A DNA stretch of 64,000 nucleotides, from sequence record MF498774.1. One strand, written 5' to 3'. This document shows, one piece after another, positions 21,079-26,502 of this stretch. The notes beneath the pieces were generated by a model. The model was not told the origin of the DNA. It did no database searches and was given only the letters and a program-made list of their open reading frames with translations. A program made the position numbers and the translations under genes. Numbering within the stretch: position 1 is the stretch's first letter; each line of letters begins with the position of its first letter.

Positions 21079-21876
21079 ATGGCATTGAATTATGTAGAAG
21101 AACCAGTAGAAAAAGAAAATAAACCAAAAAAGTCTACTGCGAAAAAACAAAAAGAACTTGACCTCGGGGTAATCAACGAAATTGTTGATGCTAATACCGC
21201 ACCAGAAGCGAAAGCGAAAATTCAAGCATATGCTAAGGAATGTGGTTTTAAAATTAGCAAGTCTAATACTTCGGTTGACGATATGATCGTTAAACTCCTT
21301 GAAATGGCGGACGCCAAAGAGAATGAAAAACTGGACCTTGCACCGGAACCGAAAGAAAAAACCCCTTTTGTCGAACCAGTTGTAGTCGATGACGAATTCG
21401 ACAATGTAGATGAGGTTATTGAACTTGGTGTGGTTGAATCAATCAAAATTGATGATGGGGTGGTTAATATCAATACTCCCAACGATGTTAAAATTGAATT
21501 CACTCCACCGAAACAACCAGAATATATTGATTCTTCTGGGTTTAAAACTCTTGACGAATTAATTGAAGATGAAAAGAAGTTCGTTAAAGAAAAAATGAAT
21601 TTGGAAACTACTAAAGATACCCAAGAACCGGATTTGACTTATGGTTTCAAGCCGAAAGTAAATCTGATTGGGGCTGTTGGTAACCAATACCTCAATTGCC
21701 CGTATTGGATTCTTGATTGGATCCTTGAGAAAGGACCGTCTTGGAAGAGTATTATTGATACTCATGAACGCGAACCGGATAAAGCACTTCTGAAAACAGT
21801 TCTTTATTACATCCAGATTAATGGTAGTGTGACATTGCGCGAGAGTCGTAATTCTCGTTTCCATACCATTTACTAA
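21079..21876 (+). CDS. inh: Inhibitor of prohead protease gp21
   Basis: EAKAKIQAYAKECGFKI, GFKPKVNLIG, PYWILDWI and LYYIQINGSVTLRESRNSRF match T4 Inh. Confidence 0.9.
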   Translation: MALNYVEEPVEKENKPKKSTAKKQKELDLGVINEIVDANTAPEAKAKIQAYAKECGFKISKSNTSVDDMIVKLLEMADAKENEKLDLAPEPKEKTPFVEPVVVDDEFDNVDEVIELGVVESIKIDDGVVNINTPNDVKIEFTPPKQPEYIDSSGFKTLDELIEDEKKFVKEKMNLETTKDTQEPDLTYGFKPKVNLIGAVGNQYLNCPYWILDWILEKGPSWKSIIDTHEREPDKALLKTVLYYIQINGSVTLRESRNSRFHTIY

Positions 21877-21881
21877 TATCT

Positions 21882-21906
21882 AGCCATCCTACGGGGTGGC
21901 TTTTTT
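21882..21906 (+). terminator. Terminator after inh (same sequence as 1649..1674)
   Basis: AGCCATCC-TACG-GGGTGGC-TTTTTT. Confidence 0.85.
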
Positions 21907-21912
21907 GTATCC

Positions 21913-21919
21913 CTAAATA
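21913..21919 (+). promoter_or_regulatory. Late promoter for the 73-aa ORF
   Basis: CCCTAAATA followed by the palindrome ATTGACCA-TTT-TGGTCAAT. Confidence 0.6.
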
Positions 21920-21957
21920 CTAATTGACCATTTTGGTCAATATAATAAGGGTGTTAA

Positions 21958-22179
21958 ATGGAATACAATTTCATCGAAGTTAATGAAAATACTTTTGTTC
22001 TTACTGGATATTTCGGTTCTTATAATTTGATTGAAAGGTGGAAAAGACTTGAAGAAGATGACCATTTGATGATCGAGAAGATAAAGGAATATTTGGAGAG
22101 GGGAGATATTGTGGTTGTACATGATGTACAAGAAGATTTATTCGTTAAACTAGATGGAGATAAATTTTACGTTTTTTGA
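21958..22179 (+). CDS. Hypothetical protein (73 aa)
   Basis: AAGGG SD, upstream late promoter, downstream terminator. Confidence 0.7.
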   Translation: MEYNFIEVNENTFVLTGYFGSYNLIERWKRLEEDDHLMIEKIKEYLERGDIVVVHDVQEDLFVKLDGDKFYVF

Positions 22180-22226
22180 TTTCGTATTGTATCAGACATT
22201 ACGAATGTTTTTAACTTTTTATACTT

Positions 22227-22250
22227 AGGTGGTCGAGAGATCACCTTTTT
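22227..22250 (+). terminator. Terminator with GNRA loop
   Basis: AGGTGGTC-GAGA-GATCACCT-TTTT. Confidence 0.7.
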
Positions 22251-22283
22251 GTATATTTTATATACAAAATAAAATAGTTTCAC

Positions 22284-22312
22284 TTGCAATCAAAGTATAA
22301 AATCTCTATAAG
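22284..22312 (+). promoter_or_regulatory. Sigma70-type promoter upstream of the structured element and SLOG gene
   Basis: TTGCAA-17 nt-TATAAG with an AT-rich UP region. Confidence 0.55.
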
Positions 22313-22319
22313 TATTTAT

Positions 22320-22416
22320 ATAGAAGATCTATAATTAGAAAGAGTGTGAGCGAAGCGAACAGGCGGCTACGCCGTCTCACTACGTTCGAGATCTATTTAT
22401 TTATAATGCTATTTAG
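22320..22416. other. Structured non-coding element (GC-rich mini-hairpin cluster between AGATCTAT direct repeats)
   Basis: GCGAAGC (22350-56), GGCG-GCTA-CGCC (22362-73), GTGAG/CTCAC (22346-50/22376-80), CGAAC/GTTCG (22356-60/22384-88) and AGATCTAT at 22325 and 22389, inside very AT-rich DNA. Confidence 0.7.
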
Positions 22417-22434
22417 GTGTGTTAAAATATCATC

Positions 22435-22995
22435 ATGAAAAGGAAAATTGTAACTCTTATAGGAACCAGATATCCTAACGAAGAGTATAAACAGTTGATG
22501 ATAAGAATTGGAAAAGCTTTTTCTGATCGTGGTTATGGTGCTAGATCTGGTGGTGCCATTGGTTCTGATACGCTTTTCCTAACCGAATATGACCCAGCAT
22601 TAACCGTTGTATATCGTCCTGATGATAGACCCGGTTGTGTTAATGTCAAAAATCATGAAAACTATTATGAATTTGAATTGCTTGCTTCCCGTGTTCATGG
22701 GTCTGGTATTGGATGGGAATTTATGCCAATTGGTCACCAAGAATTACACGCTAGGAACGTTCCTCAAGTTATGGGATTAAATCTCAAGTCTTATTCTGAC
22801 TTAGTTGTATTTTGTGCGGAAGAATCGATACATGGTACTGTATCTGGTGGAACTGCTACTGCGGTTAAAATAGCAAGAAGCCTAAATATACCTACCCTAA
22901 ACATTATGAACCCAGTTCAAAGATCAAAACTTTGTAAATGGTTGGGTATTGATGATATACCAGTATTAGAAAAGGTTGACATTTTCAATCTCTAA
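22435..22995 (+). CDS. SLOG-superfamily (DprA/Smf/YpsA-like Rossmann) protein
   Basis: TLIGTR, SGGAIGSD, HARN..V.G and SGGTATAVKIAR...IP motifs. Confidence 0.8.
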   Translation: MKRKIVTLIGTRYPNEEYKQLMIRIGKAFSDRGYGARSGGAIGSDTLFLTEYDPALTVVYRPDDRPGCVNVKNHENYYEFELLASRVHGSGIGWEFMPIGHQELHARNVPQVMGLNLKSYSDLVVFCAEESIHGTVSGGTATAVKIARSLNIPTLNIMNPVQRSKLCKWLGIDDIPVLEKVDIFNL

Positions 22996-23033
22996 ATATT
23001 GTTGTGGAATAATAACAATAAACGAGGTTGAAA

Positions 23034-23378
23034 ATGAAAAGCTCACCACGTAAGATCGCCAGAACTGCGCATGATGCGATTCGACGGTTTAATTTAATAC
23101 TAGGCGACACCGATACATTGTGGAAAGAAGAACCCGAAAAGGTTAAACGGGTCTGGACTAAACATGTAACATATATAATCGACCACCCTGATTCTGATGC
23201 TCGAACTGTTCATGAGCTTTGGAGAAATTATAAAGAGGGAGAAGGTTGGATATTTGGTGAAGATAAATCTAGAGACGAGAAAACCCATCCATGTTTGACA
23301 TCTTACGATGAATTACATGAAATAGAAAAGATGAAATATTATATTTTCATCGAAACTGTTCTTGAGCAATCAAAATAA
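23034..23378 (+). CDS. Stand-alone RyR-repeat domain protein
   Basis: HELWRNYKEGEGWIFGEDKSRDEKTHPCLTSYDELHEIEK matches the RyR repeat consensus; ATG 23034 follows GAGG; CTAAATA at 22992-22998. Confidence 0.85.
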   Translation: MKSSPRKIARTAHDAIRRFNLILGDTDTLWKEEPEKVKRVWTKHVTYIIDHPDSDARTVHELWRNYKEGEGWIFGEDKSRDEKTHPCLTSYDELHEIEKMKYYIFIETVLEQSK

Positions 23379-23409
23379 AAAAGCCCCGACCTAAAAAGGT
23401 TGGGGCTTT
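23379..23409. terminator. Bidirectional terminator between the RyR gene and gene 24
   Basis: AAAAGCCCCGACC-TAAAA-AGGTTGGGGCTTT. Confidence 0.8.
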
Positions 23410-23456
23410 CTTTTATCCAGAATAAAGCTTCTACGTCTTTTTATCTGGAAAATTAA

Positions 23457-24686
23457 TTATGCGTAATCTTTCATTTCGACCATACACATACGAGCCAATT
23501 GAGACTTGTTGGCGGCACCTACCCAATCTTCCCCATCATATACCTTAGCCGGGTTGGATTCAATTTTTCTGAAATCTGGGCTAGTAGATAGAGCGTATCT
23601 TGAGATAATACCAACTACAGGTTGTAGTGCGTCCGGATCGGCAGCAACCATAAAAGTTCCTGCTTCGTCTTCTTCTATATACGGACTGTAATAAACTGCA
23701 CTTACTGTATCAACACTATCATCAAATTTAGCTTTAACACCAACCAGCATATAATGGACTGGTGTTTTTGTATCAACAATCAATTTCATTTTAGTACCGA
23801 TAATTCGGTGTTGATCGTCAACTAATCCAGACGTTTGAATAAGTGCGGCCACATGAGCAGAAGCAAGAATATAAGTCGGTTTGAATGTGGTATCCAAAGT
23901 AATTTGTGCAGCCATACGACATGCACGAGCAACAAGATCACGACCAGCAAAATATTCAGTGGTTGCTACATTGTACGGGGTTGCTTTAACTTCTTTAGAT
24001 GCAACGGTTACCAGCTTCATGATAATATCGCTGTTAATTTCTTCTGCGATGGCGACAGACAATAGATCTTCTACTGCGGCATCACCATCCATATTCATAC
24101 CACCCATATCTTGAAGAAGTTCTAGAGTGATGTTAGATTTTAGTTTGCGACTACGAACAACGGATTTCCATTTGTTCATTACATATCTGGTTTTTTGGAT
24201 TTCTTTATCTTCTTGTGTGTTCGGTACAATTGCGTCAACAACAAGACGAAGGTTACCAGTAAAGACATTCTCAAAAAGAGAATTCAAATCACCGGAGTAA
24301 TCACCATCATTGATAACTTGGAACACATAACCTTCACTGGCAAAATATGTTTTTGATACCATACTAGCACTACCGGCTGGTAATGCAGCAACGGCGGCCA
24401 TATCAAATTCACCACCATAATTACGGTTGTCAAGGTTAATATCCCGATGACTTTGATTGTCTTCGCTAATATACTCGTAACGTACACCAAATACGTTTGC
24501 TACTGGGTCTGTAGTTGGTTGAACACCAGCAAGCTCATCATAAATTTTATTAAATGTTTTGCGAGTTAGTGAAACTAAAGAAGGGCGACCCGTTACGATA
24601 TCACCACTACTAGATTCAACCAACCGCCCGGACATACCAGACTCTTTAATTAGGTCTTGTATTTTTTTGGAGACTACTTTAGCCAT
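23457..24686 (-). CDS. gp24: Capsid vertex protein gp24
   Basis: RPSLVSLTR, VQPT, RKLKSNITLELLQD, EEINSDI, YYSPY and SRYAL; follows gene 23. Confidence 0.93.
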   Translation of the reverse strand: MAKVVSKKIQDLIKESGMSGRLVESSSGDIVTGRPSLVSLTRKTFNKIYDELAGVQPTTDPVANVFGVRYEYISEDNQSHRDINLDNRNYGGEFDMAAVAALPAGSASMVSKTYFASEGYVFQVINDGDYSGDLNSLFENVFTGNLRLVVDAIVPNTQEDKEIQKTRYVMNKWKSVVRSRKLKSNITLELLQDMGGMNMDGDAAVEDLLSVAIAEEINSDIIMKLVTVASKEVKATPYNVATTEYFAGRDLVARACRMAAQITLDTTFKPTYILASAHVAALIQTSGLVDDQHRIIGTKMKLIVDTKTPVHYMLVGVKAKFDDSVDTVSAVYYSPYIEEDEAGTFMVAADPDALQPVVGIISRYALSTSPDFRKIESNPAKVYDGEDWVGAANKSQLARMCMVEMKDYA

Positions 24687-24819: not shown

Positions 24820-26502
24820 TTAGGCACCCAGAACACGTACACGACGGTAGAAGGAGTTCTTACCGAAGATTGCAGCACCCGGCATACCGGAAGTGATCTT
24901 GGAGAAGCCTTTGTTCTTGGAACCGTCAGCGAACGGGTGCAGTTTAACACCGTAACGGGTCTTGAAGCCAAGAATGGTAGCGAAGGACTTAGGATCCACA
25001 CCACGCAGCGGGCTCAACGGGACGTATGGGCAGTAGTACAGACCTGCATCCAGTTCGGAGCTACCCTTGAAGCCTACAGTGAAGTAATCTTCAACAGCGT
25101 ACTGGTCGATGAAGACACGATACTTACCAGCCAGAACACCAGCGAACTGAGATACGGAGGTATCAGTGTTCAGCTTGGTAGTACCAGCAGCAGCCGGAGA
25201 AACCAGTTGGTCGGTGGAACCGAGCATTACGGCAACGTTACGGGAACAGATTACGAAGTTACCGTTACCACGACCGGTTTGACGACCGATTTCAGCAGCT
25301 TCCTTATCGATTTGGGTAACCAGAGCCTTGGCGCTCTCACCTTGCCAACGAGCACCACGAATGTCGTTCGGGTCGGCAAAGTTGAAGACACCAGCTTGAC
25401 CACCATGTTGGTTAGTCCAACCGGTCTTACCAATTTGAGCGGTAGCGTTGATCCACAGGATCATTTCACGGTTGATTTCTAGCATGATTTCGTTAGCCAG
25501 AATGCTGGACAGTTCGCTATCTGCATCCAGACCATGAACGTTACGCAGGTCCTGAGCCAGTTCGATGGAGTACTGAGCTTTCAGTTGACGAGCCTTAGCT
25601 TCAACTACTTGCTTATCAATACGGAAACTCATTTCAGGCCACGGGTTATTGCTGGAACCATTAAAGTTCTCTTGCAGTTCCGCCATGGAGGTAGCCATAC
25701 CTTCACCGATTTCAACCGCGATCTTGTCGTGGATTAGTTTCAGGTAACCAGCGGTTTTAACGTCAGCAGCAGTACCAGCAGTATAAGCGGTAACAAACTG
25801 AACAACCTTAGTACCGGAGTTGGAATAAGCGTCTACTTCTTCATCCAGTTGGAAGCGAGCCAGATCACCGATTGCATAGGTTCCGTCTTTATCAAAAGCA
25901 GGAATCAGCGGGGCAGTGGCACCACGACCAGAGAAGCTGGAATCAGGTGCATATTGCGGGTGAAAAGCTTCGCGAGCTTGAGCATCCAGCGCATCAGTAC
26001 CATAGATGGCACGAAGGGTGAATACCTGACCAGCGGAAGAGGTCATCGGCTGAACACCACAGATATCAAAGGCAATCAGGTTGCTGATAGCACGACGAGC
26101 CAGACCCATAACAGCCGGACCGACGTTGGTGATGTTACCGGAAGCTTCACCAGAGGCGATCTTAACAGCATCATAACCGTGGTCACCGACGATGTTAGCT
26201 TCGGTTAGCATGGTTTCCATCTCTTCACCGGTCAGTTCGCGACCTTCTGCCAGAGCAGCGGCTTGAGCTTCGTTCAGCATCTTTTTGGCTTCTGCCAGTT
26301 GAGCTTTACGACCTTGAACGTCAACCATGGAGTCGATTACGGTTTGGTCGGTATATGCAGCACCGTCGTTACTCTTGATGTCTTCATATTGGTTTTCCAT
26401 CAGACGAGCGACGATATCCTTGCGCTTCATGGTAGCAATTTCCGGCATACCTTCTTTTTCAAGCAGCGGTTTCCACTTAGCGATAATAGCGGTCTTAGAC
26501 AT
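24820..26502 (-). CDS. gp23: Major capsid protein gp23 (560 aa precursor)
   Basis: KWKPLLE, LTE|ANIVGDHGY, NLIAFDICGVQPM, SIELAQDLRNVHGLDA and GFKTRYG. Confidence 0.99.
   Translation of the reverse strand: MSKTAIIAKWKPLLEKEGMPEIATMKRKDIVARLMENQYEDIKSNDGAAYTDQTVIDSMVDVQGRKAQLAEAKKMLNEAQAAALAEGRELTGEEMETMLTEANIVGDHGYDAVKIASGEASGNITNVGPAVMGLARRAISNLIAFDICGVQPMTSSAGQVFTLRAIYGTDALDAQAREAFHPQYAPDSSFSGRGATAPLIPAFDKDGTYAIGDLARFQLDEEVDAYSNSGTKVVQFVTAYTAGTAADVKTAGYLKLIHDKIAVEIGEGMATSMAELQENFNGSSNNPWPEMSFRIDKQVVEAKARQLKAQYSIELAQDLRNVHGLDADSELSSILANEIMLEINREMILWINATAQIGKTGWTNQHGGQAGVFNFADPNDIRGARWQGESAKALVTQIDKEAAEIGRQTGRGNGNFVICSRNVAVMLGSTDQLVSPAAAGTTKLNTDTSVSQFAGVLAGKYRVFIDQYAVEDYFTVGFKGSSELDAGLYYCPYVPLSPLRGVDPKSFATILGFKTRYGVKLHPFADGSKNKGFSKITSGMPGAAIFGKNSFYRRVRVLGA

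Follow-up and report, generated by a model that had tools for sequence, protein, structure and literature searches.

A divergent RyR-domain protein of the RyDEP family, encoded beside a SLOG gene in T4-like Aeromonas phages, is a candidate sponge for an ADP-ribose-derived signal

A preprint of May 2026 reported that phage RyR-domain proteins bind or destroy the bacterial alarm molecule cyclic ADP-ribose (cADPR), and described the viral members of Pfam family PF02026 as the RyDEP family (PMC13232231). Two modes of action are known in this family: sequestration of the signal by sponges, and cleavage of its ribose-ribose bond, which the RyR-domain protein gp78 of Mycobacterium phage DyoEdafos (RyDEP; PDB 35TM) carries out with a dyad of H75 and D117 (PMC13232231). 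In RyDEP, H75 contacts the terminal ribose, W78 stacks on the adenine, H100 contacts the phosphates, and D117 touches the terminal ribose (PMC13232231). Among eight homologues from other phages, six bind 2'/3'cADPR and leave it intact, and H4 (Ruegeria) and H7 (Pectobacterium) are nanomolar sponges, each of which blocks Thoeris alone in vivo (PMC13232231). In RyR channels, the R12 domain binds nucleotides as a peripheral module; the signals on which the phage family acts are soluble (PMC13232231). Here we describe a RyR-domain gene, and the SLOG gene directly upstream of it, in a stretch of 64,000 nucleotides from sequence record MF498774.1 (the window), which comes from a T4-like Aeromonas phage.

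The gene is labelled 'hypothetical protein' in nearly all related records, and our analysis places this unannotated Aeromonas phage gene in the just-described anti-Thoeris family. A RyR domain had already been listed for the orthologue in Aeromonas phage Aeh1 in 2006 (PMC1524935). A preliminary description of the window, made from the sequence, had stated that prokaryotic RyR repeats have no established function; the preprint has overtaken that statement. The features on which the first part of the analysis rests are as follows.

22435-22995, + strand: stand-alone SLOG-superfamily (DprA-like) gene, 186 amino acids, assigned by its phrog_768 match and predicted fold
23024-23027, + strand: GAGG ribosome-binding site of the RyR gene, read from the sequence, 6 nt 5' of the ATG
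23034-23378, + strand: RyR-domain (R12-type) protein gene, phage RyDEP family member, 114 amino acids, with matches to PF02026 and phrog_5154

The RyR-domain protein and its pocket

The protein encoded at 23034-23378 matched the Pfam RyR profile with an E value of 1.3e-10 and 41.8 bits (cut-off 27.4), and the phrog_5154 profile with E 4.4e-35. Its top phmmer match in the PDB was a Bacteroides/human RyR Repeat12 chimera (E 4e-20); human RyR3 Repeat12 was found at E 3e-10, and matches to RyR3 Repeat12 and the Bacteroides RyR protein fell at about 1e-10 to 3e-9. The AlphaFold2 model (pLDDT 94.6) has four helices, spanning residues 5-22, 35-50, 56-69 and 96-113. The top Foldseek matches listed were all RyR repeats (probability 0.99-1.0, TM up to 0.66), the best being the Bacteroides RyR protein and human RyR3 Repeat12, so that the helical fold is that of the RyR repeat. 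The preliminary description had called a single RyR-repeat gene directly after a SLOG gene, and profiles and models agree with both domain calls.

Membership of the RyDEP family was seen in a phmmer match to PDB 35TM (35tm_A, E 5.5e-4) and a BLASTP match to DyoEdafos gp78 (E 2e-8). The protein is 32-37% identical to representatives of the tested homologues H5 to H8, which include the Pectobacterium sponge H7. The gene is present in one copy per genome in a close relative of the phage (G001), and its product is 100% identical across CC2-like phages. Compared with the orthologue in phage ZPAH1, the gene is under purifying selection (pS 0.74, pN 0.127). Judged by its sequence, the gene product is a functional, divergent member of the RyDEP family. 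The novelty lies in a divergent protein, with an unusual pocket, within an anti-defence family that has been described only recently, and not in a new kind of system.

The residues that line the pocket were compared in an alignment of 81 RyR-domain sequences. Residues H75, W78 and H100 of RyDEP align with H60, W63 and H85 of the window protein, and all three are invariant in the 81 sequences. Further invariant positions are K67, G71, W72, G75, K78, K83, P86, C87, L94, K101 and F105. The fourth contact differs: the column of D117 holds Asp in 77 of the 81 sequences and in every tested homologue, and the window protein has Y102 there, so that the catalytic dyad is incomplete. Tyr in this column is confined to the clade of the window protein (the window, CC2-type and phage-65-type proteins in this alignment, and ZPAH1 in other alignments). 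Position 16 is Ile in this clade, whereas 77 of 81 sequences have Asn there.

Three contacts are kept (H60, W63 and H85) and Tyr stands at the position of the catalytic acid; for this reason a non-catalytic sponge is expected. By the published mechanism, glycosidase activity would not be expected of the window protein. A search for NAPRTase/Namat-type genes (PF04095) in the close relative G001 found none, so a glycosidase would lack its NARP1 recycling partner there.

The window protein resembles RyDEP in being a stand-alone phage PF02026 domain with four helices and the His/Trp/His contacts, at 30% identity in the core. It differs in having Y102 in place of the catalytic D117, in being 24 residues shorter, and in carrying H13 and I16 in place of the Tyr and Ala of RyDEP; in addition, RyDEP lies in a NARP1 NAD-resynthesis operon, whereas the window gene does not. 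The sponges H4 (from a Ruegeria phage) and H7 have the invariant residues in common with the window protein, except at Y102 and I16, where they have the Asp and Asn of the two columns. The representative of H7 (L010, Pectobacterium, CB1_68 type) is 35% identical to the window protein over the RyR core and is extended at the N-terminus by about 75 amino acids, a region that the window protein, a bare domain, lacks. Binding without cleavage, the mode predicted for the window protein as well, was seen for both H4 and H7.

Outside the phage family, the best sequence and fold matches in the PDB (9L90, 6UHA, 3NRT) were human RyR3 Repeat12 and a protein of Bacteroides thetaiotaomicron that is known as a 'putative ryanodine receptor', with no assigned function. 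Both have HELW and HPCL motifs in common with the window protein. The RyR3 domain comprises two repeats and belongs to a calcium channel of 5000 amino acids; the window protein has one repeat unit and comes from a lytic phage.

On these grounds we think it probable, though well short of certain, that the RyR gene encodes a counter-defence protein of the RyDEP family that would act as a sponge for an ADP-ribose-derived signal, with ligand and mode taken by analogy from the characterized members. In this proposal the His/Trp/His pocket would bind a signal made by a TIR protein, and capture of the signal would keep the Thoeris effector from being switched on. By the same analogy with RyDEP, the protein would be a homodimer. 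In Ackermannviridae, proteins of about 280-290 amino acids (Salmonella phage Marshall, L008:2952-3824; Erwinia phage Bue1, L011:3003-3842) carry the RyR domain as their C-terminal half, and their N-terminus matches Pfam Phage_gp49_66 (E 1e-11); for the Ackermannviridae proteins H6 and H8, the RyR part alone was cloned (PMC13232231).

Promoter motifs and predicted expression

The following signals surround the two genes.

21882-21901 and 22227-22246: predicted terminators closing two upstream units
22284-22416, + strand: repeated promoter-plus-GC-hairpin cassette 5' of the SLOG gene, a candidate promoter, with the repetition seen in G001
22882-22888, + strand: second CTAAATA, inside the SLOG coding sequence, 145 nt 5' of the RyR start
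22992-22998, + strand: CTAAATA motif of late-promoter type, which contains the SLOG stop codon and ends 35 nt 5' of the RyR ATG
23380-23409, no strand assigned: strong terminator hairpin of 13 pairs (7 G-C) between the converging RyR (+) and 24 (-) genes, with a T-run on each strand

The heptamer CTAAATA is known from Aeromonas phage Aeh1 as the consensus of its late promoters (Nolan et al. 2006, PMC1524935). It occurs 30 times in the window, compared to 14.3 expected, and none of 100 shuffled sequences reached 30. Nineteen of the 30 copies lie 10-90 nt 5' of a gene start on the same strand, where about 4% of positions would fall by chance. Genes preceded by the motif include gp24, gp23, gp22, gp20-like genes and inh, which is the placement of a late promoter of the T4 type. 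The SLOG stop codon (TAA, 22993-22995) lies inside one of these motifs, and the RyR gene starts 38 nt after the SLOG open reading frame (ORF). The preliminary description had placed the SLOG stop within a late promoter, and both the enrichment of the motif and its identity with the Aeh1 consensus support that reading.

The arrangement is kept in relatives that have diverged to about 35% protein identity. The motif over the SLOG stop is CTAAATA in the CC2, ZPAH1 and phage-65 groups, and a late-type motif, AATAAATA, lies over the stop in Aeh1 and phiWae14. With the late promoters of Aeh1, the motif shares its heptamer, its distance class relative to the start codon and its link with T4 late-gene orthologues (PMC1524935). 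In contrast to those promoters, the motif in the window also precedes a non-structural accessory gene and overlaps the preceding stop codon, as read from the sequence.

Terminator prediction gave no terminator-like site between the SLOG and RyR genes, so transcripts that enter the SLOG gene could be read through into the RyR gene. The cassette at 22284-22416 is likely an early promoter (host sigma-70 type) for a SLOG-RyR transcript, its promoter function being deduced from its makeup. Six copies or part-copies of it (32-95 nt matched; L119-L124) are present in G001, and because the cassette is repeated, a nucleotide search found 4-6 matching places per record. The GC-rich leader at 22335-22440 had no significant fold (z -1.3), and an Rfam scan of 21800-23500 returned sub-threshold matches alone, which were driven by terminators. 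A 30-codon ORF with a GTG start (22346-22438) spans the leader, and its terminal ATGA overlaps the SLOG start codon; it may be due to chance, or it may be a coupling or leader ORF.

From these signals, the RyR gene is probably expressed twice, early by read-through and late from CTAAATA. Early in infection, RyR and SLOG would be made together from the cassette promoter upstream of SLOG; the SLOG gene would share a transcript with RyR without being an obligate partner. Late in infection, RyR would be made again, and in quantity, from its own promoter over the SLOG stop. Counter-defence genes do not usually have a late promoter of their own that is kept among relatives, and its presence here suggests that the supply of sponge is boosted late in infection. 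Late expression could provide the large amount of protein that a stoichiometric sponge needs. Structural proteins may trigger TIR sensors late in infection, a possible reason for such a boost.

The hairpin at 23380-23409, with a T-run on each strand, suggests termination in both directions. A different hairpin, the 24-nt terminator that follows inh (21882-21905), has an exact copy in reverse orientation at 1649-1672.

Alternative readings and the partnership with SLOG

Several points weigh against a cADPR sponge. In a quick tree, a very long branch (4.66 changes per column) leads to the clade that the window protein forms with the RyR proteins of CC2, the phage-65 group and ZPAH1, and two near-invariant positions are altered in this clade (N16 to I and D102 to Y). 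Because D117 contacts the terminal ribose, the change at this position may weaken the binding of cADPR isomers or redirect it to another ligand. Two of the eight tested homologues bound neither signal, and those tested include none from Aeromonas or T4-like phages (PMC13232231). This source, on which the functional argument depends most, is a preprint. A literature search gave nothing specific on Thoeris in Aeromonas hosts, and early and late transcription are predicted solely from motifs.

Some of these points could also be read as a change of job, in which the RyR proteins of this clade would bind another adenine nucleotide or immune signal, or have a role unrelated to Thoeris. The long branch fits this idea, and so does the sequence of events in which two near-invariant positions were replaced and purifying selection was strong thereafter, a pattern typical of functional shift and not of decay. 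The related human RyR3 R12 domain binds ATP and ADP analogues in the same pocket, and two of the eight tested homologues bound no cADPR isomer (PMC13232231). We nevertheless regard a changed job as unlikely, since three other ligand contacts and ten further invariant positions are intact, the gene is syntenic with its Asp-bearing orthologues in Aeh1-like phages, and nothing positive points to another ligand. Within the sponge reading, ligand specificity has possibly changed. A natural variant that lacks the conserved Asp could be used to separate the share of that residue in binding from its share in catalysis.

A second alternative concerns the SLOG gene. The SLOG protein matched the 'DprA-like' phrog_768 profile with E 2.2e-51, and its AlphaFold2 model has a pLDDT of 92.9. 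In structure comparison (VIA-align Z), the model matched Moco carrier protein (13.6), Helicobacter pylori DprA (13.4), ShosA (11.2), LOG proteins (10-11) and the SLOG domain of ThsA (9-10, including its complex with 3'cADPR); YpsA also fell within the range of 9-13.6, and unrelated folds reached Z 7.5 or less. Among 25 relatives, G39, G43, D45, R107, N108, Q111 and G138-G139-T140 are invariant and G10, R12, S38 and A41 nearly so, and the SGGAxGxD and GGT motifs are kept. The Pfam DprA profile (PF02481) reached 18.5 bits, below its cut-off of 29.6, over residues 3-47 only, a profile search of the PDB gave a DprA match of E 0.004 over the first 52 positions, and a protein homologue search returned seven close matches. 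The SLOG assignment therefore holds at the level of the superfamily, and by Pfam the protein is not a bona fide DprA.

DprA, ShosA and Moco carrier protein have a Rossmann-like fold in common with the SLOG protein (Z 11-13.6 over residues 1-172), as well as the starting motif 'GSR ... SGGAxGxD'. The solved DprA and ShosA chains are 213-353 amino acids long with flanking regions that the SLOG protein lacks, and the central Rossmann part alone aligns. Unlike for DprA, there is no evidence that the SLOG protein binds single-stranded DNA or RecA.

SLOG and RyR could form a functional two-gene counter-defence module, in which SLOG would bind or process an ADP-ribose-type signal and the two proteins would act together or in successive steps. 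The analogy comes from the Thoeris effector ThsA, whose SLOG domain binds 3'cADPR and with which, including the 3'cADPR complex, the SLOG model aligns. The two genes are adjacent and co-oriented with no terminator between them, and they are adjacent in all Aeromonas T4-like phages examined (CC2, ZPAH1, the phage-65 group, Aeh1, phiWae14 and AsFcp_1). Adjacency and the promoter over the stop are kept down to 32-35% identity of RyR and about 40% of SLOG. T4-like genomes are broadly syntenic, however, so that conserved adjacency within them is weak evidence for a module.

The gene-neighbourhood survey that the preliminary description had proposed for SLOG+RyR pairs was run, and adjacency was found in Aeromonas T4-like phages and Acidovorax phage ACP17 only. 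In viral contigs (IMG/VR), phrog_768 accounted for 4 of 76 upstream neighbours of RyR genes, and all four were on Aeromonas T4-like contigs, in one of which the SLOG frame is split in two. No SLOG family was among the 25 commonest Pfam families of the 76 viral upstream neighbours, or among the 25 listed of 44 Pfam families for 133 immediate RyR neighbours in bacterial genomes. When all ORFs in 160 loci (80 from viruses and 80 from bacteria) were searched with SLOG profiles, matches were again limited to Aeromonas phages and ACP17. In the other direction, 18 of 24 viral loci with a SLOG homologue had no RyR gene within 3 kb. SLOG genes were found in 963 phage records and RyR genes in 235 (84 and 33, respectively, in Aeromonas phages). 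Phages TG1, LKA5 and CB1 have RyR and no SLOG gene, and in Salmonella phage Marshall the SLOG gene is 15 kb away. The RyR protein of the CB1 type, from a phage devoid of SLOG, works as a sponge by itself (PMC13232231).

Phage RB49 carries SLOG without RyR in the same slot beside gene 24, and because of this SLOG may predate RyR there. These counts fall short of the adjacency across unrelated phage lineages by which a conserved SLOG+RyR module would be recognized, and the preliminary idea of such a module, for which non-conserved neighbours would be damaging, is largely contradicted by the 4 of 76 upstream neighbours, the 18 of 24 SLOG loci and RB49.

The case of ACP17 speaks the other way. Here a SLOG of the YAcAr type (PF10686, 31.3 bits, cut-off 28.2), a different SLOG family, lies directly 5' of the RyR gene and overlaps it by 20 nt. 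The ACP17 RyR protein did not group with those of Aeromonas phages in the quick tree, which is poorly resolved, so that this SLOG-then-RyR pair is apparently a second, independent case. Transfer of a cassette, with a single origin of the ACP17 and Aeromonas pairs, was considered and rejected from the same tree. Against a module also stand the published assays, in which RyR homologues suffice alone (PMC13232231), the greater similarity of the SLOG fold to DprA and Moco carrier protein (Z 13) than to ThsA, and the RNA and DNA ligase genes beside which SLOG lies elsewhere. Taken together, a functional module appears somewhat less plausible still than a change of job. The negative result on SLOG partners keeps the pair from counting as a new 'system'.

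A reading that combines these two alternatives is, in our view, more doubtful than either. The RyR protein of Aeromonas T4-like phages, with its Asp-to-Tyr and Asn-to-Ile changes, long branch and purifying selection, would have been retuned to a TIR signal other than 2'/3'cADPR; the co-transcribed SLOG would be a second, undescribed phage protein that binds or processes an ADP-ribose-type signal, mirroring the ThsA SLOG sensor; and the pair in ACP17 would be a second instance.

The preliminary description had further suggested a nucleotide-sensing or ion-flux-modulating pair; a RyR protein that deals with a nucleotide signal fits the literature. A cation-channel-related or ion-flux role, for which shared domain names alone speak (RyR repeats in ryanodine receptors, SLOG-like domains in TRPM), is highly improbable, as hydropathy analysis showed no hydrophobic segment in RyR or SLOG (Kyte-Doolittle means over 19 residues peak at 0.02 and 0.85, respectively), the two models are those of compact, soluble domains, the pair adjoins no channel or transporter gene, and R12 is a peripheral nucleotide-binding module even in RyR channels, the phage family acting on soluble signals.

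Several observations were made on the neighbours of such genes in other genomes. Stand-alone SLOG genes of phages repeatedly adjoin RNA ligase or NAD-dependent DNA ligase genes (for example, in DyoEdafos, L003:15387-17170). In Cronobacter phage leB (L093:2438-4052), the start of SLOG overlaps the end of an RNA ligase gene, with a gene for nicotinamide phosphoribosyltransferase 1.3 kb downstream. These neighbours hint at a role of SLOG in nucleic-acid repair or linked to NAD, independent of RyR. In three IMG/VR contigs (L110, L116 and L118), the frame with the SLOG match is open for 1164-1397 codons, which may reflect fusion proteins, masked sequence or another genetic code. Around RyR genes, two upstream neighbours in IMG/VR loci (L012-L091) matched the Acb2/Tad1 hairpin domain (E 3e-13), single neighbours in bacterial loci (L126-L205) matched Tad2-like, Macro, NUDIX+NrtR and SIR2_2 families, and eighteen neighbours were SU10-adaptor structural genes of prophages. 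At some loci elsewhere, then, the context of RyR genes is anti-defence or NAD-related, in line with the counter-defence reading.

Genomic setting and annotation

The region 21900-23450 is 100% identical to Aeromonas phages AS-yj and AS-szw and 97-99% identical to CC2-like phages (Straboviridae, Ceceduovirus). Several phages of the Aeromonas group that carries RyR were isolated on Aeromonas salmonicida. The genes around the pair are listed here.

21079-21876, + strand: inh
21958-22179, + strand: small ORF
23457-24686, - strand: gene 24, converging with the + strand RyR gene
24820-26502, - strand: gene 23

The SLOG-RyR locus thus occupies the slot between inh and gene 24 in which T4 and RB49 carry hoc and 24.x genes, as had been proposed, and its local neighbours are head genes and small ORFs. 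The late promoter and these head-gene neighbours might suggest an internal protein that is packaged in the capsid. This was judged unlikely because the conserved domain starts at residue 5, which leaves no room for a cleavable N-terminal targeting peptide.

Annotations of the homologues vary. The SLOG gene of ZPAH1 (MW272540.1) is annotated as 'RNA ligase', a label for which we saw no support, and RyR homologues of Pseudomonas phages are labelled 'Anti-CRISPR protein' or 'alanyl-tRNA synthetase', again with no support seen. Records in which the SLOG or RyR annotations look inconsistent are MW272540.1 (ZPAH1), BK061591.1 (D14S), and MK511039.1 and its relatives.

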